From assembly GCA_965153285.1 (NCBI GenBank), contig OZ229116.1: DNA of 64,000 nt; one strand, written 5' to 3'. The DNA is from Podarcis tiliguerta. Its lineage: Eukaryota. This document shows, in pieces, positions 2,660 through 64,000 of this stretch (positions are counted from its first letter, which is position 1; every line of letters starts with the position of its first letter). Made by a program: the position numbers and the translations under genes. A model generated the notes under the pieces. It was not told where the DNA came from, made no database searches, and was given only the letters and a program-made list of their open reading frames with translations.

Positions 2660-3116
2660 TAATACAAACTTCTTCAAATAAAAAACAAAAACAAGATAAA
2701 TATAGCATTTACGTTGACCAGCACCATGGTGCCAAAGAACTGAAGCCTGAATGTATTTGATGAAAAGGGGAGCATCAATTTATAATCCCACATAAAATTG
2801 TTGAGAAAAAGGGAGCATTGCACCTACAGGCATTCAGAAGGTCAACAATGGAACGTTTTCAAAAGGCAAAGTTCATTGTGCACATGGTAGAAATGCACTA
2901 CAGAATATGCAAGATGACTTCACCTGCCATCAGCACTACAAAACATACCATCAAGACATAGAGTAAGAAAGACAACCTATCTGTTCTAGAGATTGTTAAA
3001 CATTGTTAAACAATGGCAGTAGCAGCCTTCAGGAAATCTTTATACTCAGGAAAGTTTCCTATGCATTTTAGAATACTGGGAGATCAAATAGGAAGTACTG
3101 AAATTTATGTGCTCAC

Positions 3117-16700: not shown

Positions 16701-17022
16701 GAAATTCCGCAAGTAAGATTACTTTGATGCAATACATGATCTGGCTTTGCTATCCCCATCAATAGCAAATTTTACACTCAGAGGAATCATTAAAACACTA
16801 CCTAGATAAAATGCAATATTTATTTTAATTAATGAAGTAGTTGCTTCATCTGTTAAAAAAAGGAAATGACACTAAAATTTATTGCAAAGAATTAAATTAA
16901 GCTTTGTAATTTTAAAAAAATAATTAAATTACATAAAATGAAACCTATTGAATAAGGACAAATAAAAGAACTGACTTTCTGAACTTTAAAATAAACGGAA
17001 GTACTCAAATTCATGTACTCAC

Positions 17023-19437
17023 TTGACAGGTTGCTGCCTGCTCCTGAACAGTGTTAGAATCACCTATGAGTAATATAGGATCTGGCTTATCCGGAGCCTG
17101 TTGTGGTGTCAGAGTATTGGTACAGCTTCCAATTGGAAAAAAAATCTGACTTTTCCGAGAGCCTGAAGTCAGTGAAACCTCATGGCAATAAGACTGAAGA
17201 AATGCCCGGACTCCGTCAATCCCCACAAACTGTGAAACTGGTGCACCACTGAAATTCAAACTTGCATTATCACACAGCTGAGAATTTTTCCACCTGCGAA
17301 GTTTGAGTGCAAGTAACACAAGGAGGAAGGCAAGGAACAAGCAGGAGACAAAAGCCACTGCAGTCACCAAGTAGAAGGTGAGATCTGACTGTGGGTCTTC
17401 AGATACTGGGACGCTGCTCAGATCAGTCAGCATGTCAGGGATGCTGTCAGCCAAGACCACAGTGACAGTAACTGACGCCGACATTGGAGGCTGCCCATTG
17501 TCCTTGACTAAAACCACCAGGCTTTGCTTGAGGGCATCTTTCTCCAGAAAGAAGCGGGCTGTCCTGATCTCTCCCGTGTGGAGCCCCAGAGTGAAGAGCC
17601 CTGGCTCGGTGGCCTTGATCAGCTGGTAGGAGAGCCAGGCATTCTGGCCAGAGTCTGCATCCACGGCCACCACCTTAGTGACCAGGTAGCCTGGCTCTGA
17701 GGAGCGAGGGGCCAGCTCTATCCCTGTGGAGCCGTCAGTGGGAGGGGAGGGGTAAAGGATTTGGGGAGCATTGTCATTCTGGTCCAGGATGAAGAGAGTC
17801 ACTGAGACGTTGGAGCTGAGTGGTGGAGAACCTCCATCCTGGGCCTTGACCAGGAAATTAATCTCTTTAATCTCTTCATAATCAAAGGAGATCAAGGCAT
17901 AAACAACCCCCGTTTCAGAGTTAATAGAAAGGTAGGATGAAAGAGTAGAATCGCCAACAATTTGATCAATGATTGAAAACGTGATTGTAGCATTTTCCAT
18001 GCAGTCAGGATCACTTGCTTTCATGTAGTAAACAGATGCTCCTCTAATATTATTCTCAGTTACATAAGAAGTATATTGTATGCTATTGAAGATTGGGGCA
18101 TTGTCATTTACATCTGAAATTTCTACAAAGAACACTGTAGTGGTTGATAATGGAGGGTTCCCTTTGTCTGTAGCCATGATAGTTATACTATAATTTGATG
18201 TTTCTTCTCTGTCGAGAACTCTGTCAGTCATCAAATGGTAATAGTTATCAAAGGATTTCTCTAAGTGGAAAGGAAGAGTTTTAGGAACTGAGCACAAGAT
18301 TTCTCCATTCTCACCCATATCTCTGTCTTGTATGTTTAGTAGAGCAACCACAGTTCCTGGAGAGCTTCCTTCACTGATTGAACTGAAGAAGGTAGTAATA
18401 GTTATCTTGGGAACATTGTCATTAACATCAATAAGGATGATCAAGACTTTAGCCCTGTCGGAGAGACCTCCATTGTCCTTTGCTTGAATTTCCATTTCAT
18501 GTAATGCATCTTCTTCATAGTCCAACTTCCCTGTTGTTGATATCTCCCCATTTCTAGAATTTATTTGAAAGAGTTGTGATGCTTTCTCCTTTATTTTTAG
18601 GAATGAGTAAATCACCTCAGAATTTGTTTCCGCATCGGCATCTGTAGCATTTACAGTAAGCAGCAGAGAGCCTACGGAAACACTTTCCAAAACACTCACT
18701 TTATAGAGAGGTTGGTTGAAAATAGGTGCGTTATCATTTGCATCAAGAACCGTTACATAGATCTGCAGAGTGCCAGACCTCACAGGATGCCCACCATCAG
18801 TGGCCGTTAGGATGAGTGAGTAAAATGCTTCCGCTTCTCTGTCCAAAGATTTCTCTAGCACCAGTTCAGGAAATTTGTCCTTATCAGATCTGCTCTGTAG
18901 TTTCAGGGAGAAAAACCTGCTGCTGCTCAGATGGTAGTTCTGAAGGGAATAATCTCCAATGTCAGAATCCTGAGCTTCTTGCAAGGCAATACGAGTCCCT
19001 ACAATGGCCGTTTCACTTATTTTAAGATCTAAGCGTTCCTGGGTGAAAGTTGGAGCATTGTCATTTATATCTGTGATTTCAATGTCTACGGTGAACAGTT
19101 TCATTTTATCCTCAACAAGGACTTCAAGACTTAAAACACACTTCTCTTCCCACCCGCATATTTCTTCTCTGTCTATCCTTTCGGAGACATATAACTGGCC
19201 ATTCTTAGACTTCAAAGTAAAATATTGAAGCATACCTTCAGAGATGATGCGAACTCTGCTGTCTGACAATTTCTTGGAACCCAGTCCCAGGTCCTCTGCT
19301 ATATTCCCAATGAAAGAGCCTTTGGGGACTTCCTCAGGAACTGAGTAGTGGAGCTGCCCATAATTTGCCTGCCAGATGGCAATAAAAGCAAACCAGAAGG
19401 AGCCACTGTGTTGTCGGAGTCTCAGCATAGCTGCCAT
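17023..19437 (-). CDS. PCDHGA: Protocadherin gamma-A-like variable exon
   Basis: 808-aa ORF 17011-19437, six EC repeats plus TM plus gamma-A tail; phase-0 donor CAA|GTGAGT at 17023/17022. Family-level symbol. Confidence 0.95.
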
Positions 19438-24871: not shown

Positions 24872-25193
24872 ATACATATGAAGATCCACTTTTATTTAAA
24901 CCCAAACATTAAACAAAGGAGAGGTTTCTTAAGAAGTGAGTTAAACTTAGATTAAATGAGAAACAGCAAATTACAGTGTGAATTAAGTCAAAAAAGGGAA
25001 AATTATCTTCAAGATGATCAAGATTTTTAAATGTTTCAGTTCTTACGGTGATTCTTACAGAAACACTTGTTCAGTTGCAGTGAAGTTATTCTTGAACATC
25101 AAATTAAAGGTAAAAATAATTCAACTAAATAAATACTATATTGACATAAGCTCTTATAAAACCTTTTCAAAGTTTAGTGAAAGCAAAACATAC

Positions 25194-27611
25194 CTGTTCG
25201 CAGCTCTGCCCTTCCTTATTGATATCTGAATCATTTGCAGTAAACAGAGGTCCAGAGATTTGAGAAGCCTGATGTCCTGTCAGTGTGTTTGTACAGCTTT
25301 CAATGGGGAAAAAAATCTGACTTTTCCGAGAGCCCGAAGTTAGTGAAAATTCATGGCAATAAGTCTGAAGAAATGCCCTGACTCCATCAATCCCCACAAA
25401 CTGTGAAACAGGAACCCCATTTAAATTTGCACTTCCAGTGTCACACAACTGAGAATGTCTCCACTTGCGAAGCCTTAGTACCAATAATACAAGGAGGAAA
25501 GTGAAGAACAAGCAGGAGACAAAAGCCACTGCAGTCACCAGGTAGAAAGTGAGGTCAGACTCAAGACTGATAGGAGCTGAGATGGTGCCCAGATCAGTCA
25601 GCATGTCAGGGATGTTGTCAGCCAAGACCACAGTGACAGTGACTGAAGCCGACATTGGAGGCTGCCCATTGTCCTTGACTAAAACCACCAAGCTTTGCTT
25701 GAGAGCATCTTTCTCCAGAAAGAAGCGGGCTGTCCTGATCTCTCCCGTGTGGAGCCCCAGAGTGAAGAGCCCTGGCTCGGTGGCCTTGATCAGCTGGTAG
25801 GAGAGCCAGGCATTCTGGCCAGAGTCCGCATCCACGGCCACCACCTTAGTGACCAGGTAGCCTGGCTCAGAAGAGCGAGGGGCCAGCTCTATCCCTGTGG
25901 AGCCGTCAGTGGGAGGGGAAGGGTAAAGGATTTGGGGAGCATTGTCATTCTGATCGAGGATGAAGAGAGTCACTGAGACATTGGAGCTGAGTGGTGGAGA
26001 ACCTCCATCCTGGGCCTTGACCACAAACTTAATCTCTTGGATCTCTTCATAATCAAAGGATCGTAGGGCATAGATTACTCCAGTCTCAGAGTTTATAGAA
26101 AGGCAGGAGGAGAAGTAGGAGTAACTCATCTCACCTTCAGTGATTGAATAAGTAATTTTGCCATTCATCTCCCAGTCAGGATCAGTTGCTTTTAGTGTTA
26201 AAACAGAGGATCCAGCTGAAGTATTTTCTGTAATTGAAGTAACATAGGACCTCTTTTCAAAGGTGGGTGGATTATCATTTTTATCTAATATTTTCAGCTG
26301 AATAGCGGTGGTTGTGGAGAGAGGAGGATTTCCTTTATCTGTTGCAATAACTGTAACATTGTAATAAGATACATCTTCTCGGTCCAGGGTTCCGCTAGTC
26401 ACTAAACTGTAATAATTATCAAACGTTTTCTCTAAATGAAATGGCGGGTTGCCAAAGATGGAGCATGTAACCAGCCCATTGTCTTCTGAATCCCTGTCTA
26501 TTACTTTTAACAGTGCAATTACAGTTCCTTCTGGGCAGTCTTCACTCACAGCATTAGTAAGAGATGTGACTGCAATTTCTGGTGCATTATCATTTATATC
26601 GGTAATAGCCAACAGAATATTTGCTCGACCTGATAAGCCTCTTCCATCACGAGCCTGAACCTCCATTTCATACAAAGCACATTCCTCAAAATCTATCTGC
26701 TGCCTCACCCTTACGTCTCCAGTTCTCGGATCCAAATGGAAACTGTTCGAAGCCTTTTCTGATACCTGCCTGAATGCATATGTTATCTCTGAATTAATGC
26801 CTTCATCCAGATCGGTAGCATTGACTGTTACAAGCAGGGAATTAACAGGAATGTTTTCTGCAGTGGTCACTTTATAAACAGATGCTGAAAAAACTGGTGC
26901 ATTGTCATTTGCATCTTCAACGGAAACTTTGATGTGTGCAGTTCCGGATTTGACAGGATTCCCCCCATCACTGGCTGTAAGGATTAAGTCATGAAAAGCT
27001 TCTACTTCTCGATCCATAGACTTTTCCAGTACTAACTCAGCATATTTGGCTCCACTTGCTGTCATTTGCACATCAAGGAAGAAGTGTCTGTTAGGGCTGA
27101 TTTGATAGCTCTGTAAAGAGTTCACTCCTAAGTCTGGGTCCTGTGCATCTGGAAGAAGAAATCGAGATCCCACAGCTGTATTTTCTCGGATATTTAGCTG
27201 CAATGTCTCCACTTGGAATGTTGGTGCATTGTCATTGATATCTTCGATTTCAATTTCTACTGTATAGACTTTTAGCTGCTCCTGAATAAGAATCTCCAAC
27301 TTCAAAATACAAGTTAACAGACGTCCACATATTTCTTCTCTATCTAGTCTTTCATTAATATATAAATGACCATTTTGGAAATTGAGGGCAAAATATTGTG
27401 TCCTACCTTCTGTAATAATCCGGACACCACCAGGCAAGAGTTGCTTCATATCCAATCCCAGATCCTGCGAGAGATCCCCAACAAAAGAACCTTCCTGCAG
27501 TTCCTCAGGAACTGAATAATGGATCTGTGCAGTAACTGCCTGAAAAACAGCTAGCAGAACAAGGCAGGATGTCTGTCTCCTTCTATCCAAGAGTGTCTGT
27601 ATACAAGCCAT
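25194..27611 (-). CDS. PCDHGA: Protocadherin gamma-A-like variable exon
   Basis: 814-aa ORF 25167-27611, six EC repeats plus TM plus gamma-A tail; phase-0 donor CAG|GTATGT at 25194/25193. Family-level symbol. Confidence 0.95.
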
Positions 27612-29722: not shown

Positions 29723-30967
29723 ATAGTGGGAAAGAATCCATTTTTATATTGTGTTGCATTGCTGTCAGATGGCTAGTGGAGTGCAAGTAGATTCAGGTTT
29801 GGTGGTCAGTCTCAGCTTCAGGTTTTGGAGGGCCTTGGGCAGGACCTTGCTCAGTAAGCCCACCTGCTCCCCACTCCCATAATCACCAGGTACTACTGCT
29901 TTCCCCCAAGCCGGAAAGGACAGGGTAGCCTTCTGGTCATTGCCTGGTCTGACCTGACCTAAAGTACAACCACCTACTAACTAAATGCAGTTCACTAATA
30001 TATGGAAACTTTTCTTTCCAATTCTGGTGCCTCAATTGTGGTCCAGCAGAGTTTTTGTAATGACAGTAGAAAAGAAGTGTTCCAAAAGTGGGGAAGGCAA
30101 GAAGTTAAGGAAATGCCAGCAGAGAACTGAAACCAAGGATTGATCAGTTGTAGCCAGAGTTGTTGAATGTTAAGGAAAGTTACTTTGTTTGCAGCAGCAA
30201 ATATTTCAGTTGTCTGCTCCATATATCTAAAACCATCTGTCACCAGAGATTTCAAGACAATTTAGAAAAATTAGAACAAGTAGAACAATAATAAATACAC
30301 TCAGCTCTTGCCTCCTCCAGCCATGTTCAATGACCAGAGGGAGAGAAGTGGCAGCTGCACATTTTCCTCCCTCCTATCTCTGCTCATTGACTCAGAGACA
30401 GCATCCGAACAAGCAAGGAGAAGCACCTGGAATCAGAGACCTCAGGGATTGCTTGTAGGCAACTTGCTGTGGCCCAATAATGCCAGTTCCAATGCCACCT
30501 TGACTTAGGATAGTTCAAGCAGCTACTTGCCAAGAGCAACAAACCTCTCCCTGGTGATATAGATAAATCCAACCCAGTAACGAACCCAAATGACATCTGT
30601 TAAGGAAATACTTTAACAGGAACTCTTGTCTGCAAGTGTTTGTTCCTTTATGCCCATTTCTTTCCCTTTACTTGCCATTAAAAAACCCTAACCCTAGACA
30701 GCAAAGAAAGTGCAAAGAAAGCGGGGGGGGGGGGGGGAGGCAAATGCCACTCACTTTCTGAATTTATGAAGTGCAAAAATCAACTAATGTTTGGTGGGGT
30801 ATTACTCAAAATACATGGCTAAACGCTTGTAAAATAAATACAAATCCACTCTGCACAATTCTTAGCTCAGTGCCCAATGAGCTCTGCAGACTGTATCACA
30901 TTCAACTTGTTTCTGCTTTGTACATTGTAAAATGTGAGCAATCTTAATTTTAGAAAATGAAACTCAC

Positions 30968-33481
30968 CTGCTCAGAGTTTTGTCGTACTGTATCAGTGCT
31001 TGGATCTTCCATAGTTAATAAAGGACCTAAATTATCGGCAGCTGGATGAGATGAGAGAATATCTGTACAACTTCCAATTGGAAAAACAATTTTATTGTTT
31101 TGGGAGCAGGTAGTTAGTGAGCCGTCAGGGCAGTAAGACTGAAGAAAAGCCCGGACACCATCAATGCCCACAAACTGTGAAACAGGTACTCCATTGAAAT
31201 TTCCAAATCCTGAGTCACACAATTGTGAGTTTCTCCACCTATAAAGTCTAAAAGCTAGTAACAAAAGCAGAAAGGTGAAGAACAAGCAGGAGACAGCAGC
31301 TACTGCAGTCACCAGGTACGAAGTGAGCTCACCATCAGATTGTGGGTCTTCAGATACTGAGATGCTGCTCAGGTCTGAGAGGATTGCAGGGATGGTGTCA
31401 GCCAGCACCACAGTCAGAGTGGCTGAAGCAGAGAGAGGTGGCTGCCCATTGTCCTTGACTAAAACCACCAGGCTTTGCTTGAGGGTATCTTTCTCCAAAA
31501 AGAAGCGGGCTGTCCTGATCTCTCCTGTGTGGAGCCCCAGAGTGAAGAGCCCTGGCTCGGTGGCCTTGATCAGCTGGTAGGAGAGCCAGGCATTCTGGCC
31601 AGAGTCCGCATCCACGGCCACCACCTTAGTGACCAGGTAGCCTGGCTCAGAGGAGCGAGGGGCCAGCTCTATCCCTGTGGAACCGTCGGTGGGAGGTGAA
31701 GGGTAAAGGATTTGGGGAGCATTGTCATTCTGGTCAAGGATGAAGAGAGTCACTGAGACGTTGGAGCTGAGTGGTGGAGAGCCTCCGTCCTGGGCCTTGA
31801 CAAGGAAATTAATCTCCCTGATCTCTTCATAATCAAAGGAGTGTAGGGCATAGATTGCTCCAGTTTCAGAGTTAATTGAAAGGTATGTAGGAAGGAAGGA
31901 ATTTCTGACTTTAGTCTCATGCTCACTTATCTGAGAGTAAGTCCCATTGAGCTCATTGGAATTCACTTCTGAGTAGGCTTTCTTAGCATTGGGCTGCACA
32001 ATATCTCTTTCAATGATAGAGTAAATTATTCTGCCATTTTCCTCACAATCAGAGTCATGTGCCTTCAAAATAGTAATGAATTCACTTCTGTGGTTATTTT
32101 CCTCAAGATAAAAAGTGAATGCTGTATTTTTAAAGGTGGGTGGGTTGTCATTTTCATCTAATATTTCTAGTGGGAAGTAAGCAGTTGTTGAGAGAGAAGG
32201 AATCCCTTGGTCACTTGCTATTATTGTGATGTTATAGTCTGAGACCCTCTCCCTGTCAAGGACACTTGCAATCTCCAAGTTGTAATAGTTGTCAAATGCT
32301 TTCTTCAACAGAAACGGAAGTCCTGCTGGTATAGAACATGAGACTTCTCCATTTCCCCCATCATCTCTGTCATTTATATTTATAAGACCTAGTACAGTTC
32401 CTGGAGGAGAACTTTCTTCAACCTTGCTGAAAAGTGGTGTAATTGCAATCTCCGGTGGATTGTCATTCGCATCCATGACTCTTATGACTACTCTAGCGCG
32501 AGTAGACAAGCCAGCCCCATCTTGTGCTTGGACTTCCATTTCATGTGCTATAGATTCTTCAAAGTCAATATTCCCAATGACTGATATTTGCCCTGTTGCA
32601 GAATCCAAGTGGAATATTTTGGAAGCTTTGTCTGAAATTTTTCTGAATGAATACATTACCTTTGAGTTTATTCCCTCATCAAGGTCGGTTGCATTCAGAA
32701 TTAACACGTGCGACCCTTTAAGCATGTTTTCCATAACGTCTGCTTCATACAGAGACTTACTGAAAATAGGAGCATTGTCATTTACATCTGCAACAGCAAC
32801 ACGGATTTGCACCGTACCAGACCTGGCAGGTTCTCCTTTGTCAGCAGCAGTGAGAATTAGTTGGTGCACTTTTTGTTCTTCTCGATCTAACAGCTTTTCA
32901 AGGACTAGTTCTGCGTATTTGATCCCATCAACTCCAGTTTGTACATCCAAGGAAAAGTGTCTGTTGCTACTGAGATGGTAGCTCTGGAGAGAATTCGTCC
33001 CTAGATCTGGATCCTGAGCCCCTGGTAAAAGAAACCTTGCCCCAAGACCTGAGTTTTCAGCAATTGTTAATTCAAACTCTTCTACAGGGAAGCTGGGTGA
33101 GTTGTCATTAATATCAGTTATTTCAACTTTAGCCATAAAAAACTTCACTTTATCCTTCACAAGAATCTCAAAATTTAACAGACATTTTTCTACCTGGTGG
33201 CAAATCTGCTCCCTGTCAATTACTTCCTTGATAAACAAATGTCCATTTCTCAAATCAAGTGAAAAATATTGCTTCATACCTCTGGAAATTATCCTGGTGT
33301 CTCCACTTGATAACTCCTTTACGCTCAGTCCAAGATCCTTTGCAATATCTCCTACAAAAGAACCTTCCTCCATTTCCTCAGGAATCAAATAATGTATTTG
33401 CCCAGAAGCTACCTCCCAGACCATCACCAGCACAAAGCAAAGCACACTATTCTTTTGATAACATAGAATCCTTCCAGCCAT
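30968..33481 (-). CDS. PCDHGA: Protocadherin gamma-A-like variable exon, first gamma exon after the beta subcluster; 31-aa insertion in EC5
   Basis: 843-aa ORF 30950-33481, six EC repeats plus TM plus [15 protein letters not shown] tail; phase-0 donor CAG|GTGAGT at 30968/30967. Family-level symbol. Confidence 0.95.
31907..31998. repeat. Palindromic MITE-like repeat embedded in frame in a coding exon
   Basis: cacttatctgagagtaagtcccattgagctcattggaattcacttctgagtag...tagcattgggctgca; colinear with the intergenic copy at 19862-19945; absent from paralogous exons. Confidence 0.7.
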
Positions 33482-38172: not shown

Positions 38173-40613
38173 TAGGTTGGTAATGCAGATCAGGGAGAAT
38201 TTCTTCCCTCTGGCCCATGCCTGGTCTGTAAAGCAGGCTATGGTTTGTGGCCTTTGCAGTTTGCCTTGCTGATGCTTGCTACCCCACCCCAGGGATCCTG
38301 TTTCACAAAGCATTTCCATCCATAGATTTTAGAAAGTGATTTTATTATTTTATGAACATACAAAAATGATATTCAAATCTAGCAAACAATATGTAAAAGT
38401 ACACAGCATCTTTTTCATCTTCTCATAACAAAAAGATGACATTGACAGTGCATAAAAAGAAATATGTGCATATCTTAAAACTAGCATGTTTCCCTGCTGA
38501 TTCCAGTTGTATATAAATTGTACTCTTTCCTATCCTGTTTCACTATAATACTACTTCCCACTTCCTTTCATCCACAGACTTCAAAATGCTTCACTATTGT
38601 GAATTTTTGTCATTGAAAGAATATAATACAATTCCCAAAACACAAAGGTTTACTGAAAATTCTATTCCAAACTGCACAATTACATAACCACATAACTGTG
38701 AAACCACACTGTTATAATATAGTCTATAATTCCTGTTTTAGAGTGTTTACAGTAGCAGTTTATCATAGGCTGACAGCTGGGTTTAACACTAAATTGTCCC
38801 TGTCACTGTAGAGAATGGAGATTGGAATCAATTTGGTGTTAAGTCCATCTAGTTACCACCGGAGTAGTTCCAAACACCATAAATAAACCAACATTAAAGG
38901 CCAGCTTTAAATAATGTGATTTAGCATAGTTTACATTGTTCTTTTCAAATACAGTATGCTTCATTATTCCATTGCTGGAAAGAAGTATTGATTAGCTTGC
39001 AAACAATTTCTCAGCATCAGCCGCAGTGTTCGAAACTCCCATTTTTCTAGGCACATTTTGCGGCAGGGAATTTCATTAGCGCGAGCAGTTTCAGAGCTCT
39101 GGGCGCACTTCTGTGACTAAGATTTCAGATTAAAACTGCAGAGTGGAAGGAAAAGAGGACCTTTTTCTGTCTCCCTACTTCCAGCTACTCTCTGAAGACT
39201 GGAGAAGTGACCCTCTTAAGAATATTAGGGGGTTGGGCAGGGGAAGGACTAGACCATGTGAAAAATGAACATAATATTTTATCTGCAGTTCATTTTCAGT
39301 TTTGTATTCTTCCTATAAAAAAGCATGCCTAGACATTTCATTGTTGCGCCCATAACCTAGGTTTAAGGTTCCTTTTCGCTCCTAGCTTTCATATCTCAAT
39401 TTTTTAACACTGGCCGCAGATTGTGGGTCAATTGCAGGAAAACAGGAATAGTTAAATTTCAGAGAAAACATGTGCACATGTATGTGTATGCACACATGAG
39501 GTGTGTATGTGGACTCGACAGCCTGGTTTGCACATAACATTAAGCTATGGTTTATTAATTTATGGTTCATTAAACTACAGCTGACTGTTATGTGTGAACC
39601 CAGCTCAACAGTTTAACTATGGTGCATTAACCAAAATTTGTAGCTGGTTTATATATCTTAGTATTAACCAGAATGTAAGCACTACATGTCAGCCTGGACC
39701 TCCTCCAAAAGCTACAGAGCTGCAAGTGACAAGTGGCAAAAAATTCAAACTGTTCTCTAGGCTTGACTGCTCTTGCTTGTGCTTTTAACTGTTCTGTGAT
39801 ATAATAATCAAGTGAGCATCTAGATTTAGTTCAGTGTTATGTGCAAACTAGGCCAATGAAAGAGAAGTTGCTAACACAAATATAGCTACAGGAAACGGTA
39901 GAATTGAGCATTTAGACAGGAAAGTGCACACACAGTGTAACTATGACTAGAAAATAAAGTGTAAATTCACTGAGAAATGGAAGTCCTATGTGCAAGCTTC
40001 ACTGAAATAAATGGGAGAAATATTCTCTTACAAAGCTCCCATTCCTTTCAATGTCCCAGTGGACTATGTCCAGACTTCTCCCCCCTTACTGATTATACTC
40101 ATTCATTTGTCTCGCTAGGTCTTCAAATGAAGCTACTGGATACTACTAACAGCTGCATTACAACCAGCAAACAGAATTTCTGAGAAATTGCTATAACCAT
40201 TGAAAATATTTGAAGGAAAGCAGCAAAGCTAGCATAAAAATAAACTAAGGAATAATTACAACAATGAGCATGCAATAAAGTCACCTACATTTCTTTAACC
40301 AGCTAGATCAAAAGAGCAGTGGGCTACTGTAAAATTCTACAAAGCATAAATATAATTGTCTACTAGGTCAATGTATGTGGACAATCCAGCTACACATTCT
40401 CCTACATAAGCTCCATCGAAATGAATGAGAACAGCACAAGAGCATTTCTGTTCCTTTCTATTTTGCTTGCACAAGAGAGTTCCTGGTATCTTTCTCCTTT
40501 AGGCAGAGGACCCATTTTTTTCCAGGCCAGGGGTCAAGTTTCTTGCATGAGACTTGATCATTTGGTTATTTGTCTTCAGAGAAAGAATGATGGATGGAGT
40601 TGGTCGTCCTCAT

Positions 40614-40733
40614 CTATTGATAGGTAAGCCAGTCATTTTGACCACAGTTTATATTTGCCCCAGTTGCCTGATTGACAATGCAACCCGGGGCTGCAGATCT
40701 GGGAGCAGCGTCTTCAGAGAGAGATGCTCTGGC
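40614..40733 (-). CDS. Candidate shared terminal (constant) exon for the beta variable exons, derived from an EC6 relic
   Basis: Acceptor cttttttgtgtcctttgcag|GCC; phase-0 frame ARASLSEDAAPRSAAPGCIVNQATGANINCGQNDWLTYQ-stop (120 nt). Ungapped match to beta EC6 [39 protein letters not shown] (14/39 identical). The homology is firm; use as an exon is inferred. Confidence 0.6.
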   Translation of the reverse strand, partial: ARASLSEDAAPRSAAPGCIVNQATGANINCGQNDWLTYQ

Positions 40734-42857
40734 CTGCAAAGGACACAAAAAAGTGCATTGTAATTTTCTGAAAGCTGATGTGGTTTTCATTAGATAAATG
40801 CTGCCAAGGCATTAAGCTGCAGTAAGAAGAGTGTAATGAAATGCCATGCTTACCAGACAGGAACATAGCAAACGTTTTCTGAAAACCCAAAATATGAACT
40901 GTGACTGTGTGATACAACAACGTTGTACTGCCAAGGATGGTAGTACTATGAGTTTGGTGACAATCCCGTTTCTTTTCAGCTTGAACGAACTCAAGACAAT
41001 GCCTGAGATCATAGCAGGGAACTCATTATACCAAAAAACAACTATACCTTTTGTCCAGCAGCAGCTTTGTAGCATTTATGTTTGCTACTAACCTCCATTC
41101 CCAAGCCTTCTTTCCTTCATTAGAGTGACACAAATAGTTGTTAGCTTGTTTACACAATCTGTACCCTACTTCTCTATGAGGCAGCTCACAACATTTTCAA
41201 TAAAACAAGAATAAAATCCAAAATCAGGAAAGCAGCCCAGCTCAAAATAAATACACCAGCTAAGAGCCTTTTGCCACAATTACTTACCAACAATCACCAA
41301 AAAAATAATCTACAGCTAACCCAAGGTTTGGCTTAGATGGTGGAGGAAAATGGAGCATAGCAGTTGATCTAGATTTGAAGGCAAATATGCATGGGAGGAC
41401 ACAACCCTTAAGGCATGCAAGCAATGTTCAACATATTTTATCAGACATATTTTGACCACTATGGCAGGGAATGATTCCTTCCCGAAACCTTAAAAAGTGT
41501 TTGCAATGCTGGACTAGAGGGACCAATGGTCTGGCTTGGTATAAGGCAGCTTTCTATGGGCCAACTGAAGTTTTCAAGTGCTCTGCAAATACAGCCCCAG
41601 GTTAATTCACATTATAGCAGTCTAATGTGGATATTACTTTGGTGTGGGTCATTGTTGCCAGAAAGGGCACGGCTGGCACACTGGTCAGAGTTAATGAAGA
41701 GGTTCTCCTGCTCAGACTGCCACCTGGAGATCCAGGAGCCTCCTCCCAAATAGGCCCCGGTTCCTAAGAGGGAGGAGCACAATGCCGTCATTAAAAAGTT
41801 ATGATCTTGGATGATATGATTACCTGGCTGACAGTACTTCCTTGTTATCTAGATGAAGTTTCAACTTTCGTTCTATCGCTATACGCCTCTACTTTCTCCA
41901 GTATCACTCATGGAGTTTAAGTGGCTGAATGAAAGATGTGAAGTTACTGCTCTAGTTACTGCGCACCTTAGCACCAAATGAATGACTCCTCATAATTGTC
42001 TTCATGATTCTTTTGAGTCTTACACCATACTTTAATAATGAGTTTTTATCTTCATAACTCTCACCTTTTAAAAAAATATATATCTTTTGTTTCCTAAATG
42101 GTTCTCTTACCCAGTTTCTGTTCAGCCAATTTTAGTCTTCCATGGTGCTGTTGGAAACTGGGACTTCCTTCCGGAAGATTTATTGTATTGTTCTAATCCC
42201 CATATTCACACCAAGGAATGTCATATCTTCAATAACTCCCCATAATTATCATTCTTCCACTCACCGTATATTCTCCTCCCCTTTAGCAAGAACATAATTT
42301 ACACAGAGCATTCAGAATATATTCATGAAAAGTCTCATTGCCAATAATGTATTCCAGTTTCATTAATTCACAATCTGTCTTACATTTCTCTGAAATAATA
42401 TTTACTATGTAGTGATGAATATATTGGATTCTCAATTTACTACCCTATTTAAGCCATATATAGCAAAACCCAATTGATTTGCAAATTAAGCCTCCAACTT
42501 AAAGCATTCTCTCTTTTCAAAAAGGCTTCCCTTAGGTAAAATACCCTAACTCAGAGTTATTTTCAGAAGTGGAAAGAATGAATTTCTGGGTAAATGTGAT
42601 TAATGAACTTTGGTAGTCAATGGACAGACATTATATATGAAGAATCTGCAACGAAATACTGCAATCCATTTTCACAAATGACATGTAAACTGGTTTTTGT
42701 CTTTCCCATATATGTAATGATAAATCTGGTCTCAAAGTTTGGGGAATGTGCAGTGCAACAAAAGGAGGGAAGTATATTGTGTGAGTGTTTTGACTATTGA
42801 TCCAAACCCCTAAAATGTATTTTATATAATTGACTTTTCATTTCTATTCTTTGTATA

Positions 42858-43253: not shown

Positions 43254-45677
43254 CTGAACCACATGTTGATTTTCACCTACATGTCTGGGGACTCCGTCAG
43301 AATCATTGGAACTCCTTGGATTCACCTGAGTGTTAGGAGGCTCCACAGAGAAAACAGGAAACAGGGGCCTGAGAAACCGGAACTCGCTGTTCAGAGACCC
43401 ACCAGCTAAGCACACCTCATAGTTGTAAACCTGGGATAGAGATCCAGCACCAGAATCCGCAGAGTTCTCCTGGGAATCAGGTCCCACCGGGAAATTGGCT
43501 CCAGAGTTGTAGGTTCCTGTGAACTTTTCACGTTTCTGCAACTTGATTACAACAAAGGCCACTACAGAAATGAGAAAGATGCTTGAGATGGCAGCCAAGC
43601 AGATGATCAAATACATCGTCAGGCTGGGGTCTTCCTCCTCCACGGTTTCCTCCTTTGGGAGAGCCACACTTTTCAGATAAGGGTCAGAGAAGCCGTCCAC
43701 TAGAAGGATTCTGAGCGTGGCAGAGGTGGACTGGGGAGGATGGCCGTTGTCTCGGACCACCACAATCAGATTCTGCTTGAAGCTGTCTCGGTTGCTGACC
43801 GGCCTCAGGGTGGTCACTTCTCCATTCTGGGCCCCCACCGTGAACAGACCCGGCTCTGTGGCCTTCAGCAGCTGGTAGGAAAGCCAAGAGTTCTGCGCAG
43901 AATCCCTGTCCACAGCCACCACCTTGGTGACCAGGTAGCCAGTCTCTGCCCCTCGGGGAACCAGGTCATTCGAGGGGGAAGTGCCATTCTGGAGAGGGTA
44001 GAGGATGAAGGGGGCATTGTCATTTTCATCCACGACCTGAACGCGGATGGGAACTTCTGAGCTCAGTGGAGGGGAACCTGAATCCACAGCCCTCACCCTC
44101 ACCTGGAAATCTTGTACTTCCTCATAATCCAGAGACCGGATGGCATACAGGTTCCCCGTTTCAGAGTTGATGGAGATGTAAGAGGATGTGGGGCCATCAT
44201 TGACCTTCCCAGGCAAAAGCGAGTAGGTCACTTTGGCATTCTGCGCTGTGTCCAGATCAACAGCATGGATGAAACCGATCAGAAGACCAGGAATATTGTT
44301 TTCTCTTAACTGCATTTGATAGAACGGCTTTTCAAACACTGGAGGGTTGTCATTGACATCTGAAATTTGAACATGAAGTATTCTTGTGGAAGTGAGTCTG
44401 GGAGAGCCCTTGTCAGTGGCTGTGATGGTGATGTTATACTCAGAGGCTTGTTCTCTGTCCAGTGGTTGTTGAGTCACCAGCTGGTAATAGTTGTTCTCCG
44501 TGGGTTTGAGCACAAATGGAAGGTTGACTTCAGTGGTGCAGGCAGTTCTGCCACTGTCCCCAGAGTCCACGTCTGTGACACTGAAGAGGGCCACCACTGT
44601 GTCTGGGGGAGAGTCCTCAGGTAAGGGACTGGTGATGGAAGTGATGGTAATCTCTGGGGCATTGTCATTCTCATCCTCAATCTCTACAATGACTTTGCAG
44701 TAAGCAGAAAGGCCTCCTCCATCTGTAGCTCTGATATTCATCTCATATTTTGTTCTTTCTTCATAATCTATTATACCTGAGATAGTAAGTTCACCTGTCT
44801 TTTTGTTTAAGTTGAATAATCTCTGCACATTCTCTGGCACTTGGCTGAATGAGTAAGTGATGTGAGCATTGGAACCAATATCCTTGTCTCTGGCTTCAAC
44901 TTTTGTGACTAATGTTTCCAATGGGCTGTTTTCCACCAGTTTTTCCTGGTACACGGATTTATTAAATAGAGGAGCATTATCATTGATGTCCAGAACATCT
45001 ATGATGATTTGTGCTGTTCCAGTTTTGCGGGGTATTCCTCCATCAACAGCTGATAGGATTAGGAAAAGCTGTGCTTCCACCTCACGGTCTAATGGTTTCT
45101 CCAATACTAGGTCTGCATATTTAGTACCATCACTGTGACTCTGCACATCCAACCTAAAATACTTATTAGGACTAAGTGTGTAATTCTGAACAGTATTTTC
45201 TCCTTTGTCTGAATCTTGAGCTGTTTCCAAAGGGAATACAGTATTTATGTGAGTTTGCTCAGGTATTTCAAAAATAAATTGATCTTTCGAGAATTTGGGA
45301 GAATTATCATTCACATCCTCTATTTGAACTTCAATTCTATATAGCTTCAATGGATCTTCTAGCACAATTTCAGAGAGCAGAACACAATGGTCATTCTGAC
45401 CACAGAGAGCCTCTCGATCTATTCTATCCTTTAATATCATGTTGCCAGAATGGGGATCCAGCTGGAAAAACTGCTTGCTGCTCTTAGAAACCAGCCGGGC
45501 TCTCCGAGCAGAAAGGTTCTTTACATCCACTTTCAAATCTTTCAGCACATTAGCCACCAGGGACCCTGTTTTCCTTTCCTCTGGCACTGAATATTGGATG
45601 GAATTGCATATTGCCCCATACATGCAGAGAGACAGAAAGAAAAAAGTCACTTGCCTGTTCCTGTTATTCATTTCCAT
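43254..45677 (-). CDS. PCDHB: Protocadherin beta-like variable exon, subtype A (last intact beta exon)
   Basis: ORF 43209-45773; first in-frame ATG at 45677 (acaATGG, MEMNNRNRQV) precedes the signal peptide. Beta hallmarks YPLQNG at the EC6 start and SLSQVYNYEVCLAGGSLNSEFRFLRP in the tail. Phase-0 donor CAG|GTGAGA at 43254/43253; read-through stop at 43209. Family-level symbol. Confidence 0.93.
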
Positions 45678-51288: not shown

Positions 51289-53709
51289 CTCTTTCCCTGG
51301 TTCTGTTTTCCCCACCTGGTCAGGAATATCTTGGGAAGCAGATGGAGGGGCCTGGTTCACATTGAGGTTTGGGTCCCCCACAGAAAAAACAGGAATGAGG
51401 GGCCTGAGGAACCTGAACTCGCTGCTCAAGGACCCCCCGGTTAAGCACACGTCGTAGTGGTAACTCCTGGAAAGCGACCCGCTCTGAGAATCGCCACAGT
51501 TCTCTGGGATGTCGGGTCTGGCAGGGGGGAAGTGAGGAGGGGCAGCAATAAAACTTCCCCTGGGATCCCTCCTGCAGATCTTGATGGCAGCAAAGGAAAC
51601 AATGCAAACGAGGAACACAAAGGAGACTGCAGCAAGGCAGATCACCAAATACAAGGTCAAGGTCCCATCTTCTTCGTGCTCCTCTTTCCTGACCTCCACA
51701 GCCTTCATATAAGGATCCGAAAAGCCACCCACGGGAAGGACATGGAGCATGGCAGTGCTGCTCTGGGGAGGGAGCCCGTTGTCCCTGACCACTATCAGGA
51801 GTCTCTGCTTGCTGGTGTCTCGCTCGCTCAGGGCTCTCTTGGTTCTCACTTCCCCGTTCTGGGCTCCTATGCTGAAAAGACCAGGGTCTGTGGCCTTCAG
51901 CAGCTCATAGGAAAGCCACGAGTTCTGGCCAGAATCTCCATCCACAGCCACCACCTTGGTGACCAGGTAGCCGGCCTCCACCGACTTGGGCACCAGCTCA
52001 TTGCAGGGGGATGTGCTGTTCTGAAGAGGGTAGAGGAAGAAGGGAGCGTTGTCGTTTTCGTCTAGGATTACGACTCGGACAGTAACTTCTGAGCTGAGGG
52101 GAGGAGACCCTCCATCTGTAGCCCTCACCGTCACTTTGAAATCTTTGATCTGCTCGTAATCCAGAGATCGGAGGGCATACAGATTTCCGCTTTCAGAGTT
52201 GACTGAGATGTAAGAGGCCACAAGGCCATCAGTGACCTTCCCAGGCAAAAGTGAGTAGGTGACCTTGGCATTCTTCTCGGTGTCCAGATCAGCAGCACGG
52301 ACTGAGCCAATGAGCAGTCCTGGAATATTGTTTTCCCGTATCTGCATTTCACATGAAGACTTTTCAAATACTGGAGGGTTGTCGTTGACGTCTGAGATCT
52401 GAACATTAATAATTCTTGTTGAAGTGAGCCTGGGGGAGCCTTGGTCAACTGCTGTGATGGTGATATTATATTCTGGGACCTTTTCTCTGTCCAGGTAGCT
52501 TTGGACCAGAAGTTGGTAATAGTTATTCATAGTGGGTTTTAAGACAAAGGGAAGGTTTGTCTCCACAGAGCACACAGTTCTGCCGTTTTCTCCGGAGTCT
52601 CGGTCAGTGACACTGAAGAGAGCCACAAGTGTCTCCAGGGGAGAATCCTCTGCCAAAGGACTAGTGATGGATATGATGGACACTTCAGGGATATTGTCAT
52701 TCACGTCTTCAATCTCTACCAGGACCTTGCAGTGACCTGAAAGACCCCCTCCATCTGTTGCTTTGATGCTCATGCTGTAACTGGTTTCTTTTTCATAATC
52801 AATTTGTCCCAAAACAGTTATTTCCCCAGTGAGATCATTTAAGTGGAAGCAACGGTGTATTTTTTCAGGTACCCGATCAAATGAGTACGTTATTCGTGCA
52901 TTTGAGCCAAAATCCGAATCTCTGGCTTCTACTTTGGAGACCAGGGTGTCCCTAGGGCTGTTTTCCTTTAACCTTACTTTATATTCAGAATGAGTAAACT
53001 GGGGGAAATTATCATTGATGTCCAAAACCTTGATATTTATCTGAACTGTGCCTGTTCTCTGTGCCTCTCCTCCATCCGCAGCTGTGAGAGTCAGTCCAAA
53101 CTCTGCTGCTTCTTCCCTATCTAGAGGTTTCACCAAAATAAGGTCCAAATATTTGTTTCCACTTTCATCACTTTTTACTTGGAGCCAGAAATGCTCATTG
53201 GAACTGAGAGTGTAGTTTTGGACGTTATTTTTATCCAAATCTGTATCTTGTGCAGATTCCAAAGGGAAGTGGGTATTGATAGGGACATTCTCTGGAATAT
53301 CTATCTTGAATTCCTTTTTTGAGAATTTGGGTGTATTGTCATTTACATCTTTTATTTCCATTTCTATACTGTAGATCTTTAAGGGGTTTTGGAGCACAAT
53401 TTCAGAGAGCAGCAAGCAAGGATCAGTCTCACCGCACAAAGCTTCCCTGTCTACATTATCATTTATCAGCAGATTCCCAGAGTGGGTATCAAGGTGAAAA
53501 TATTGCTTACTGTTCTTAGAAACCAGCTGGGCTCTGCGAGCAGAGAGCTCCCCTGTTCCCAGTTTCAAATCCTTCAGCACATTAGCCACCAGAAATCCAC
53601 TTTTCTTTTCTTCAGGCACAGAATAACGTATTGAGATACACATCACTCTAGACACAGAGAATAAGACGAAGAGATACAGACCTTGCCTGTTCCTGGTGCA
53701 GTCTTCCAT
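51289..53709 (-). CDS. PCDHB: Protocadherin beta-like variable exon, subtype B
   Basis: ORF 51277-53751; first in-frame ATG at 53709 (accATGG, MEDCTRNRQ). Six EC repeats, TM, tail SLSRSYHYDVCLTGGSLSSEFRFLRPLIP. Phase-0 donor GAG|GTGAGC at 51289/51288; read-through stop at 51277. Confidence 0.93.
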
Positions 53710-54287: not shown

Positions 54288-56699
54288 CTGACATCTCAGA
54301 CGTGTTTCTTCTTCATTACAAGGCACTTCTTGGGACCTTGGATTCACCTGAGTGTTAGGAGGCTCCACAGAGAAAACAGGAAACAGGGGCCTGAGAAACC
54401 GGAACTCGCTGTTCAGAGACCCACCAGCTAAGCACACCTCATAGTTGTAAGCCTGGGATAGAGATCCAGCACCAGAATCCGCAGAGTTCTCCTGGGAATC
54501 AGGTCCCACCGGGAAACTGGCTCCAGAGTTGTAGGTTCCTGTGAACTTTTCACGTTTCTGCAACTTGATTACAACAAAGGCCACCACAGAAATGAGAAAG
54601 ATGCTTGAGATGGCAGCCAAGCAGATGATCAAATACATCGTCAGGCTGGGGTCTTCCTCCTCCACGGTTTCCTCCTTTGGGAGAGCCACACTTTTCAGAT
54701 AAGGGTCAGAGAAGCCGTCCACTAGAAGGATTCTGAGCGTGGCAGAGGTGGACTGGGGAGGATGGCCGTTGTCTCGGACCACCACAATCAGATTCTGCTT
54801 GAAGCTGTCTCGGTTGCTGACCGGCCTCAGGGTGGTCACTTCTCCATTCTGGGCCCCCACCGTGAACAGACCCGGCTCTGTGGCCTTCAGCAGCTGGTAG
54901 GAAAGCCAAGAGTTCTGCGCAGAATCCCTGTCCACAGCCACCACCTTGGTGACCAGGTAGCCAGTCTCTGCCCCTCGGGGAACCAGGTCATTGGAGGGGG
55001 AAGTGCCATTCTGGAGAGGGTAGAGGATGAAGGGGGCATTGTCATTTTCATCCACGACCTGAACGCGGATGGGAACTTCTGAGCTCAGTGGAGGGGAACC
55101 TGAATCCACAGCCCTCACCGTCACCTGGAAATCTTTCACTTCCTCATAATCCAGAGACCGGATGGCATACAGGTTCCCCGTTTCAGAGTTGATGGAGATG
55201 TAAGAGGATGTGGGGCCATCATTGACCTTCCCAGGCAAAAGTGAGTAGGTCACTTTGGCATTCTGCGCTGTGTCCAGATCAACAGCATGGACGTAACCGA
55301 TCAGAAGACCAGGAATATTGTTTTCTCTTAACTGCATTTCATAGAATGGCTTTTCAAACACTGGAGGGTTGTCATTGACATCTGACACTTCAACATGAAG
55401 TATTCTTGTGGAAGTGAGTCTGGGAGAGCCCCTGTCTGTGGCTGTGATGGTGATGTTATACTCAGGGGCTTGTTCTCTGTCCAGTGGTTGTTGGGTCACC
55501 AGCTGGTAATAGTTGTTCTCTGTGGATTTGAGCACAAATGGCACGTTGACTTCAGTGGTGCAGGCAGTTCTGCCACTGTCCCCAGAGTCCACGTCTGTGA
55601 CACTGAAGAGGGCCACCACTGTGTCTGGAGGAGAGTCCTCACGTAAGGGACTGGTGATGGATGTGATTGATATCTCTGGAGCATTGTCATTCTCATCTTC
55701 AATGTCTACAATGACTTTGCAGTAAGCAGAAAGTCCCCCTCCATCTGTGGCTCTGATGTTCATCTCATAATTTGTGTTTTCTTCATAATCAATTGTTGCT
55801 GCAGTAGTAAGTTCCCCGGTGTGTTTATTTAATTTGAATATTCTCAACACATTTTCTGAGACTTGCCTGAATGAATAAGTGATATGTGCGAAGGAACCAA
55901 GATCCCTGTCAGTGGCTTCAACTTTGGTGACCAGTGTATCTGGTGGAATGTTTTCGAGTAGTTGCACATTATATACTGATTTATTAAAGTGAGGGGCATT
56001 GTCATTGGTGTCCAGAACTTGAACAATAATTTGTGTACTTCCGCTTCTTATTGGGACCCCTCCATCAACAGCTGACAGCATTAATGTAATCTGTGGCTTC
56101 TCCTCACGGTCCAAAGGCTTTTCTAATACCAGTTCTGCATATTTGCTACCATCACTGTGACTTTCCACATCCAGCCTAAAATGTTCATTTGGACTAAGGG
56201 TGTAGTTCTGAACAGCATTTTCTCCTTTATCTGAATCTTCAGCTTTTTCCAAAAGGAATCGGGTATTCGTGGGTGTCTGCTCAGGTATTTCCAAGACAAA
56301 TAGTTTTTCAGAGAATATTGGGGAATTATCATTCACGTCCTCTATTTCAATCTCAATTCTGTGCAGCTGCCATGGCTTTTCCAACACCATTTCACAAAGC
56401 AGAACACAAGGGTCATTCTGACCACACAGGGACTCTCGGTCTATTTTATTTTTTATTATCACATCCCCAGACTGGGAATCCAGCTCAAAATACTGCTTGG
56501 CAGTCTTCGAAAGCAGCTGCGCTCTCCGAGCAGACAGCTCCTTTACTTCCATTTTCAAATCTTTCAGCAGATTAGCCACCAGAGACCCAATTTTCTTTTC
56601 CTCAGGCACTGAATAGCGGAAGGACTCACACACCACACCACAGGTACAGAGACAGATAAAGAAGAGACAAACTTGCCTGCTATAATGGAGGATTTTCAT
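54288..56699 (-). CDS. PCDHB: Protocadherin beta-like variable exon, subtype A
   Basis: ORF 54264-56933; first in-frame ATG at 56699 (MKILHYSRQV). Six EC repeats, TM, beta tail. Phase-0 donor CAG|GTGAGG at 54288/54287; read-through stop at 54264. Confidence 0.93.
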
Positions 56700-60638: not shown

Positions 60639-63059
60639 CTGTTCCATTGGCTTCCTGCTCTCCAGAGCATCAGGAATATCTTGGGAAGCAGACGGAGGGG
60701 TCTGGTTCACATTGAGGTTTGGGTCCCCCACAGAAAAAACAGGAATGAGGGGCCGGAGGAACCTGAACTCGCTGCTCAAGGACCCCCCAGTTAAGCACAC
60801 ATCGTAGTGGTAACTCCTGGAAAGCGACCCGCTCTGAGAATTGCCACAGTTCTCTGGGATGTCGGGCCTGGCAGGGGGGAAGTGAGGAGGGGCAGCGATA
60901 AAACTTCCCCTGGGATCCCTCCTGCAGATCTTGATGGCAGCAAAGGAAACAATGCAAACGAGGAACACAAAGGAGACTGCAGCCAGGCAGATCACCAAGT
61001 ACAAGGTCAAGGTCCCATCTTCTTCCTGCTCCTCTTTCCTGACCTCCACAGCCTTCATATAAGGATCCGAAAAGCCACCCACGGGAAGGACATGGAGCAT
61101 GGCAGTGCTGCTCTGGGGAGGGAGCCCGTTGTCCCTGACCACTATCAGGAGTCTCTGCTTGCTGGTGTCTCGCTCGCTCAGGGCTCTCCTGGTTCTCACT
61201 TCCCCGTTCTGGGCTCCTATGCTGAAAAGACCAGGGTCTGTGGCCTTCAGCAGCTCATAGGAAAGCCACGAGTTCTGGCCAGAATCTCCATCCACAGCCA
61301 CCACCTTGGTGACCAGGTAGCCGGCCTCCACCGACTTGGGCACCAGCTCATTGCAGGGGGATGTGCTGTTCTGAAGAGGGTAGAGGAAGAAGGGAGCGTT
61401 GTCGTTTTCGTCTATGACAATGACTTGGACATTAACTTCTGAGCTGAGGGGAGGAGACCCTCCATCTGTAGCCCTCACCGTCACTTTGAAATCTTTGATC
61501 TGCTCATAATCCAGAGATCGGAGGGCATACAGATTTCCGCTTTCAGAGTTGACTGAGATGTAAGAGGCCACAAGGCCATCAGGGACCTTCCCAGGCAAAA
61601 GGGAGTAGGTGACCTTGGCATTCTTCTCGGTGTCCAGATCAGCAGCACGGACTGAGCCAATGAGCAGTCCTGGAATATTGTTTTCCCGTATCTGCATTTC
61701 ACATGAAGACTTTTCAAATACTGGAGGGTTGTCATTGACGTCTGAGATCTGAACATTAATGACTCTTGTTGAAGTCAGCCTGGGGGAGCCCTGGTCAACT
61801 GCTGTGATGGTGATATTATACTCTGAGACCTTCTCTCTGTCCAAGGGACTTTGGACCACAAGCTGGTAATAGTTATTCATAGTGGATTTTAACATAAAAG
61901 GAAGGTTTGCCTCCACAGAGCACACGGTTCTGCCATTGTCTCCGGAGTCTCGGTCTGTGACAGTGAAGAGAGCCACAAGTGTCTCCAGGGGAGAATCCTC
62001 TGCCAAAGGACTAGTGATGGATATGATGGACACTTCAGGGACATTGTCATTCACATCCTCAATCTCTACCAGGACCTTGCAGTGACTTGAAAGGCCCCCT
62101 CCATCTGTTGCTCTAATGTTCATCTCATACCTGGTTTCTTTTTCATAATCAAGCTGACCAGAAAGAGTGATTTCCCCCGTGATTTCATTTAAATAAAAGA
62201 AACTGTATATTGTTTCCGGTGCCTGGTGGAATGAGTAGGTGATCTGTGCATTCGAACCAACATCCAAATCTGTAGCTTCCACTTTGAAGACCAGAGTGCC
62301 CTGTGGGCTGTTTTCTTTTAACCTAGCTTTATATTCAGGCTGGGTAAAGAGAGGAAAGTTGTCATTATTGTCAAGAACATTAATATTTATTTGAACTGTG
62401 CCTGTTCTCTGTGGCACCCCTCCATCCACAGCTGTGAGAATCAGTCCAAAGTGTGAGACCTTCTCCCTGTCCAGTGGCTTCTCCAGGACAAGATCCACAT
62501 ATTTCCTTCCATCCTTGTTGCTTTTCACATGTAGTCGGAAATGCTCATTGGGACTGAGTGTGTAGTTTTGGATACCGTTTTCTCCTAAGTCCTCATCTTG
62601 GGCAGATTCCAAGAGGAACTGAGTGTTTGTAGGAACAATCTCTGGAATTTCCAGATCAAATTTATCTTTAGAAAATTTGGGAGTATTGTCATTCACATCT
62701 TCTATCTTCATTTCTATACTGTAGATATTTAAGGGGTTTTGAAGCACAATTTCAGAGAGCAGCATACAAGGATCAGTCTGGCCACATAAAGCTTCTCTGT
62801 CTATTTTATCATTTATCAGCAGATTCCCAGACTGGGTATCAAGGTGGAAATATTGCTTTGTGCTTTTGGACACTAGCTGGGCTCTGTGAGCAGAGAGTTC
62901 CCCTTTTCCCAGTTTCAGATCCTCCAGCACATTAGCCACCAAAAACCCCTTCTTCTTTTCTTCAGGTACAGAATAGCGAAATGAAATGCAGACTGTTTTC
63001 AACACAAAGAGAAAAAGCAAAAGATACAGACCTTTCATCTTTCTGAAGCTATCGTTCAT
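60639..63059 (-). CDS. PCDHB: Protocadherin beta-like variable exon, subtype B
   Basis: 809-aa ORF 60630-63059, six EC repeats, TM, beta tail. Phase-0 donor CAG|GTGAGA at 60639/60638. Confidence 0.93.
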
Positions 63060-63613: not shown

Positions 63614-64000
63614 CTGGAGGATATGTTGACTTTCACCTGCATGACTGGGGACTCCCTCAGAATCATTGGAACTCCTTGGATTCACCTGAGTGTTAGGAGG
63701 CTCCACAGAGAAAACAGGAAACAGGGGCCTGAGAAACCGGAACTCGCTGTTCAGAGACCCACCAGCTAAGCACACCTCATAGTTGTAAGCCTGGGATAGA
63801 GATCCAGCACCAGAATCCGCAGAGTTCTCCTGGGAATCAGGTCCCACCGGGAAATTGGCTGCAGAGTTGTAGGTTCCTGTGAACTTTTCACGTTTCTGCA
63901 ACTTGATTACAACAAAGGCCACTACAGAAATGAGAAAGATGCTTGAGATGGCAGCCAAGCAGATGATCAGATACATCGTCAGGCTGGGGTCTTCCTCCTC
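63614..64000 (-). CDS. PCDHB: Protocadherin beta-like variable exon, subtype A, 3' part only (truncated by the window edge)
   Basis: TM and cytoplasmic tail nearly identical to those of the 43.2 kb and 54.3 kb exons. Phase-0 donor CAG|GTGAGA at 63614/63613; read-through stop at 63542. Confidence 0.9.

Follow-up and report, generated by a model that had tools for sequence, protein, structure and literature searches.

A putative constant exon of the protocadherin beta subcluster in Podarcis tiliguerta, probably derived from an extracellular cadherin repeat

The window considered here, i.e., the complete stretch of 64,000 nucleotides of contig OZ229116.1 from the lizard Podarcis tiliguerta (assembly GCA_965153285.1), to which all coordinates refer, carries on its minus strand ten protocadherin variable exons of about 2.4 kb each, five of the beta type followed by five of the gamma type. 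The beta and the gamma arrays are separated by a gap of 9.7 kb, and no gene is located between the arrays in the window. A short exon is located on the same strand within this gap, between the last beta variable exon, which ends 2.5 kb before it, and the first gamma-type exon (Table 1); it very probably serves the beta subcluster as a genuine constant exon.

The assignment of the five upstream exons to the beta type is based on their best database matches, which are named protocadherin beta, on the YPLQN linker preceding the sixth extracellular cadherin repeat (EC6) and on the cytoplasmic motif EF(R/K)FL(R/K)P. Their closest proteins come from Podarcis, Lacerta and Zootoca with identities of 93–96%, which identifies the animal as a lacertid; P. 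tiliguerta itself is not among the species from which proteins were retrieved. In all five beta exons the last codon, CAG or GAG, is complete (phase 0) and GTGAG follows, and the gamma exons end alike. That the phase of the five beta donors fits the acceptor of the short exon had been noted by the first-pass annotation, which was made from the sequence alone. The residues directly preceding the donors differ strongly between the beta paralogues, yet the donors are kept in all five of them. The beta exons belong to two subtypes, which are distinguished by SVEPPNTQ or SVGDPNLN in the cytoplasmic tail and which alternate along the array, suggesting tandem duplication of a two-exon unit.

The acceptor of the short exon has its AG at 40735-40734 and 15 pyrimidines in the 20 bases before its CAG. 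The previous AG lies at 40769-40768, leaving 32 AG-free bases; the acceptor itself had been recognized by the first-pass annotation, and only the length of this zone, given there as 34 nt, had to be corrected. The acceptor opens phase 0 and thereby fits all five beta donors, each of which ends on a complete codon. Direct reading reproduced the proposed frame of 39 codons ending with TAG, and a pattern scan recovered the proposed first AATAAA downstream of it, which would be the candidate poly(A) site of a shared 3′ untranslated region (UTR).

Table 1. Coordinates of the protocadherin exons and of the sequence elements at the shared exon within the window.
Feature	Position	Strand	Remarks
Beta variable exon, fifth, 3′ part only	63614..64000	-	Cut by the window end; donor CAG/GTGAGA after 63614; SVEPPNTQ subtype
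Beta variable exon, second subtype	60639..63059	-	Donor CAG/GTGAGA after 60639; SVGDPNLN
Beta variable exon	54288..56699	-	Donor CAG/GTGAGG after 54288; SVEPPNTQ subtype
Beta variable exon, second subtype	51289..53709	-	Donor GAG/GTGAGC after 51289; SVGDPNLN
Last beta variable exon	43254..45677	-	808 codons from ATG to donor; donor CAG/GTGAGA after 43254; SVEPPNTQ subtype
3′ splice site region	40734..40770	-	AG, pyrimidine tract, AG-free zone and ENDNA relic (40768-40754)
Coding part of the putative beta constant exon	40617..40733	-	39 codons, phase 0; read directly
TAG stop codon	40614..40616	-	Position kept in all 29 distinct tails
EC6 likeness fading out after the stop; presumed 3′ UTR begins here	40590..40613	-	DNA alignment; in-frame tblastn alignments extend to 40602-40599
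First AATAAA after the stop, candidate poly(A) signal	39551..39556	-	1060 bases downstream; pattern scan
Gamma-type variable exons	30950-33481, 25167-27611, 17011-19437, 10830-13271, 3105-5540	-	

Occurrence and conservation of the shared tail

A database search with the last beta exon retrieved many models named 'protocadherin beta-16-like isoform X...' with a length of about 845–848 residues, which equals the 808 residues of the variable exon plus 39, and these models end in the peptide family that is encoded at 40733-40617. Among the squamates the tail is present in Podarcis muralis, P. raffonei, Lacerta agilis, Zootoca vivipara, Rhineura floridana, Elgaria multicarinata, Pogona vitticeps, Sceloporus undulatus (model P0043), Anolis sagrei (P0118), Salvator merianae and Hemicordylus capensis as well as in the geckos Euleptes, Eublepharis, Heteronotia, Paroedura and Sphaerodactylus, i.e., in geckos, iguanians, anguids, teiids, cordylids, an amphisbaenian and lacertids. 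A second search with a turtle beta query revealed it in the cryptodire turtles Chrysemys, Trachemys, Malaclemys, Gopherus, Chelonoidis, Mauremys, Pangshura, Pelodiscus, Caretta and Dermochelys, and the pleurodire turtle Emydura has the same 39-residue tail and end. The tail is thus recorded from at least nine families of squamates and from six of turtles. A region-limited homologue search with the turtle tail itself returned 13 turtle proteins and did not recover the squamates, so that it is silent on crocodilians, birds and the tuatara.

The occurrence of this exon with unchanged length and stop in squamates and in both cryptodire and pleurodire turtles dates it back at least to the common ancestor of squamates and turtles, placing its likely origin before the split of these groups. 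The first-pass annotation had proposed that the exon was built in this lineage, and this proposal of a lineage-specific invention is rejected on these grounds.

In the proteins fetched the tail peptide forms the very C-terminus in all 65 occurrences, the models being assigned to 19 named genera of squamates and turtles and, in addition, to one assembly contig. Within one species the tail is identical across isoforms, with 4–8 models per species (eight in Heteronotia, eight in Paroedura, six in Hemicordylus and five in Podarcis), as expected for a shared exon. The records carrying it comprise NCBI isoform sets, UniProt/UniRef entries of the TrEMBL type and one open reading frame (ORF) of an assembly contig; the question raised by the first-pass annotation, whether automated annotations already model this exon, can hence be answered with yes. 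For the window itself, the tail is carried by Podarcis models with 95% identity to the exon 43254..45677, by model P0017 with 96% identity to the exon 54288..56699 and by model P0013 with 99% identity to the partial exon 63614..64000. With donors in five of five exons and with models of 95–99% identity joined to the shared exon, these genes do not correspond to the single-exon type of beta gene.

Comparison of 29 distinct tails from squamates and turtles showed that the stop codon is always at the same place and that length changes are restricted to a loss of three codons in Rhineura and a gain of one codon in Eublepharis, both in frame. The conservation of frame and stop among relatives, which the first-pass annotation had set as a check on its proposal, was accordingly found. 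The exon of the window shares 59–65% of its residues with gecko tails and 49–64% with turtle tails. For comparison, identity to turtles is 25–33% in the 45 variable-tail residues before the exon and 58–62% in the whole variable exon, where the variable parts compared are paralogues and not strict orthologues, making the contrast somewhat generous. Judged from these values, the exon appears to evolve about as slowly as the variable exon. Near-invariant positions are concentrated in an R-x-S-x-S-E-D stretch near the start and in the end Q-N-x-W-L-x-Y-Q, every tail ending with W-L-x-Y/H-Q, and several columns hold the same residue throughout, lacertids and pleurodire turtles included. The conserved columns invite the guess that the serine-acidic stretch may be phosphorylated and that the aromatic end may serve in docking.

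Conservation extends into the intron end. The ORF P0124, which encodes 74 residues on a 2258-base assembly contig of another lizard, continues across the acceptor into the exon, and its tail is most similar to that of the Pogona type. The ORF aligns with window positions 40808-40617 over 64 residues including the exon (tblastn, E 1e-25), and the 25 codons upstream of the exon align in the same frame without any indel. This conservation of the intron end between distant lizards probably reflects the branch-point and pyrimidine-tract region.

Beta donors are also found in other combinations. In P0015 from Podarcis muralis and in P0165, P0191 and P0199 from sea turtles, the same donor is joined to further exons downstream with unrelated tails, and the alternative beta tails of the sea turtles are common to several isoforms. 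For the alternative ends of P0015 and of P0031 from Tiliqua, the window yielded no significant match, the best tblastn match of the P0015 tail having an E value of 0.099. In P0113 (Hemicordylus capensis isoform X16) the constant exon is reached from an alternative donor right after Y-N-Y-E, skipping about 55 residues of the variable tail.

Two observations concern the gamma-type exons of the window. The exon 30950-33481 is about 30 residues longer than its four neighbors, with the extra length upstream of EC6, as its W-L-S-Y-Q motif is located at residue 632 compared to residues 601–606 in the others. Moreover, a stretch of 90 residues around the EC6 motif is nearly identical in all five gamma-type exons (3105-33481), with two positions differing, while the N-terminal residues differ. 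This is the pattern that would be expected from gene conversion homogenizing the 3′ part of the variable exons.

Resemblance of the exon to EC6

A tblastn search of the 9.7-kb gap with the ORFs of nine variable exons returned one significant place, 40751-40599, which was always aligned to EC6 with E values of about 1e-6. Other protocadherin relics, either collinear or significant, were not found by tblastn in this gap. Furthermore, an hhalign comparison of a profile of the 29 tails with a profile of the variable exons of the window placed the tail on EC6 columns 577-608 of 811 (probability 96.6, E 6.4e-10). A phmmer search with the 39 residues against 1.84 billion representative proteins resulted in 13 proteins at E values up to 0.001, namely one true copy of the exon (P0124) and twelve protocadherins aligned at their EC6 segment, including ordinary single-copy EC6 segments with E values of about 1e-4; this library consists of representatives at 50% identity, in which tail-bearing proteins may hide under tail-less ones, and the search is therefore silent on other clades. 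The turtle tails, which evolve slowly, resemble EC6 more than the lizard tails do, which fits descent from EC6.

The DNA alignment shows how the parts of the exon correspond to the presumed source. The Gln codon of the beta YPLQ motif is aligned with the acceptor CAG, and the codons before this Gln are aligned with the pyrimidine tract. Intact beta exons already bear a pyrimidine-rich run and a CAG at this site, so that the acceptor was inherited and not built. Further upstream, the relic of the ENDNA calcium linker matches in 13 of 15 bases and is followed by a gap of 4 bases, leaving it out of frame and intronic; it has the beta-specific linker length, which is three bases shorter than in gamma. 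That this relic, located 21–35 bases upstream of the acceptor, is still recognizable is attributed to the constraint on the intron end. Beyond the stop codon the likeness persists for about 25 bases and then fades. In all these respects, i.e., the likeness to EC6, the Gln codon turned acceptor, the out-of-frame linker with its 4-nt deletion and the loss of homology soon after the stop, the first-pass annotation had read the sequence correctly.

The exon does not contain a complete cadherin repeat of about 100 residues with its calcium-binding motifs, as about 45–50 residues align, and its translation has no match to the Pfam family Cadherin. Taken together, derivation from a beta-type fragment at the boundary of EC5 and EC6 is supported by these alignments. 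The source would have been either a complete variable exon that died at this place or a copied fragment only; about 180 bases of likeness remain.

Proposed splicing and alternative explanations

Based on the sequence and on the gene models of relatives, we consider it probable, at roughly 80%, that the element at 40733-40617 is a used and selected beta constant exon derived from EC6. Of the idea put forward by the first-pass annotation, that a common beta C-terminus arose by exonization of an extracellular-domain fragment, the constant exon and the EC6 origin are thereby retained, and the restriction to this lineage is given up. Expression would begin with the choice of one beta promoter, from which transcription proceeds across the beta variable exons lying downstream. 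A usable 5′ splice site would, in this context, be presented by the first variable exon only, and the later ones, being without an acceptor, would be removed as intron. The donor of the chosen exon would be spliced in cis and in phase 0 to the first acceptor downstream (40734/40733). In the message, the 39 shared codons and the TAG would then be followed by a common 3′ UTR, for which the AATAAA at 39556-39551 is a possible end signal. In this way the beta isoforms would all receive one and the same short cytoplasmic end. Concerning the origin, a Gln codon would have become the acceptor CAG, Pro/Phe/Leu-rich codons would have become the pyrimidine tract and a point change would have created the stop, all before squamates and turtles separated.

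Several points weigh against this interpretation. Splicing in P. tiliguerta would follow from the sequence and from the models of relatives, and the use of the exon by all five donors is putative, one of the two subtypes of the window being seen joined to it in the relatives' models. For the second subtype (51289-53709 and 60639-63059), no model with the tail was among those retrieved, and its donors are equally good. The tail is absent from the few models of snakes, Varanus, Tiliqua and Gekko that were listed, either by loss or by incomplete annotation. Models exist only where the frame is open, by which species with a broken exon become invisible. Finally, read-through models stopping 2–17 codons past the donor are annotated in many species for the same genes, suggesting that splicing may not be constitutive and that spliced and read-through forms may both exist.

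A first alternative accepts a true shared terminal exon and places its selected role at the RNA level, i.e., in 3′ end formation, in a common 3′ UTR or in a stop codon located in the last exon, with the peptide being incidental. The peptide is short, has no match in Pfam and stems from an extracellular strand region that is unable to fold as such in the cytoplasm, and the intron end just upstream, which is likewise kept without indels, points to some constraint on the nucleotides. However, a role of the RNA alone would not account for indels being exclusively in frame and for the fixed stop in 29 distinct tails, nor for a residue conservation far above that of the adjacent variable tail with several columns invariant across squamates and turtles, and we regard this explanation as unlikely.

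Less probable still is a second alternative, in which the beta exons splice mainly to the distant gamma constant exons, entered in phase 0, and the 39-codon exon is a minor alternative end. Donors of the same form and phase in beta and gamma exons, the lack of a gene between the two arrays in the window and the derivation of beta from gamma variable exons given in a review (PMC7811963) would be compatible with such splicing. Yet among about 240 beta-like models retrieved, none shows a constant tail of the gamma type or reaches the length of about 930 residues that would go with it, the constant-tail family PF15974 was listed for a gar gamma model only, and the strong conservation of the 39-codon exon argues for its regular use; gamma constant exons are therefore rejected as the main target.

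The third alternative, a decaying remnant of a dead variable exon that has retained frame and AG by chance, with models that are artifacts spread by homology-based prediction, is close to refuted. It could draw on the pyrimidine tract and CAG of intact beta exons, by which the acceptor is inherited and not built. However, a neutral stretch of 117 bases would not keep frame, length and stop in squamates and turtles, all the more as nothing else of the presumed source exon can be recognized any longer, showing that decay acted outside the exon. The exon is moreover recorded in NCBI, in UniProt/UniRef and in an assembly-contig ORF, and the beta donors are conserved while the residues next to them are not. 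A neutral pseudogene remnant is hence rejected, as is a chance ORF.

Comparison with known protocadherin clusters and exonizations

A constant beta exon has, as far as the literature could be searched, not been described for lizards, other reptiles or the coelacanth, in spite of its presence in public automated annotation; the papers state that beta lacks constant exons. In the anole, Jiang et al. (2009) reported that the beta genes lack constant exons and determined splice sites by reverse transcription PCR for delta, alpha and gamma only (PMC2764143). The cluster described there resembles the one of P. tiliguerta in that the beta array is directly followed by gamma without intervening genes, and pseudogenized variable exons are common in it. 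In contrast to that report, the models of Anolis sagrei (P0118) and Sceloporus (P0043) carry the beta constant exon. Since reviews and the only reptile cluster paper deny beta a constant region or a common cytoplasmic part (PMC2764143, PMC7811963, PMC4978886), the exon would correct a textbook statement as far as reptiles are concerned.

With the mammalian protocadherin-beta genes, called single-exon genes by Etlioglu et al. (2016; PMC4978886), the reptile genes share the family of variable exons with the YPLQN linker and the EF(R/K)FL(R/K)P motif and the position of the array directly upstream of gamma-type exons, the alpha side being located outside the window. The mammalian genes are described to end inside the variable exon, with neither splicing nor a common domain (PMC2764143, PMC7811963, PMC4978886), whereas here the donors are kept and the models of relatives are joined to a shared exon. 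Wu and Jia (2020) left open whether beta exons lost splicing to gamma constant exon 1 or whether a duplicated cluster lost its constant exons (PMC7811963). The reptiles would represent an intermediate state, in which beta exons keep gamma-like donors yet use a constant exon of their own that is unrelated to that of gamma, and the question of beta origin thereby becomes accessible to a test, for which reptiles would be compared with birds, monotremes, amphibians and lungfish or coelacanth. It is conceivable, although the odds are rather against it, that the beta constant exon predates the reptiles and was already present in the ancestor of amniotes, or in that of all animals possessing a beta cluster, with the mammalian state being a secondary loss of splicing. 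If so, the beta cluster would have been born as a full variable-plus-constant unit, the original constant exons of which were replaced by a recycled EC6 fragment. For experimental work in lizard models such as Anolis sagrei or Paroedura picta, an antibody, a probe or a knock-in tag directed at the one shared peptide and 3′ UTR would reach the whole beta family at once.

In its arrangement the beta exon corresponds to the constant exons of the alpha and gamma clusters, as a shared exon lies 3′ of tandem variable first exons of about 2.4 kb on the same strand, the variable exons end with a phase-0 donor of the CAG/GTGAG type and the isoforms obtain an identical cytoplasmic end. It differs in size and source: the alpha and gamma constant regions consist of three exons with about 125–150 codons (Pfam Cadherin_tail), while the beta exon is a single one of 39 codons, which comes from ectodomain coding sequence and has no likeness to the alpha/gamma constant domain. 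An hmmscan search with translations of 39 and 45 residues at E values up to 10 revealed no Pfam family, and the full model P0007 is without PF15974. The beta exon thus appears to work like an alpha or gamma constant exon without being homologous to them.

Regarding its origin, the exon is similar to exonizations of non-exonic or pseudogene sequence by way of a cryptic acceptor, such as those of Alu elements, in which a pre-existing pyrimidine stretch and CAG, here provided by codons, became a working 3′ splice site with a new coding exon. Typical exonizations are young, restricted to one lineage and included at a low level. The beta exon is unlike these in being common to squamates and turtles and in evolving as slowly as the rest of the protein, and it would represent an unusual exaptation, in which coding sequence of an extracellular domain was turned into a cytoplasmic tail that has been kept since before the squamate-turtle split.

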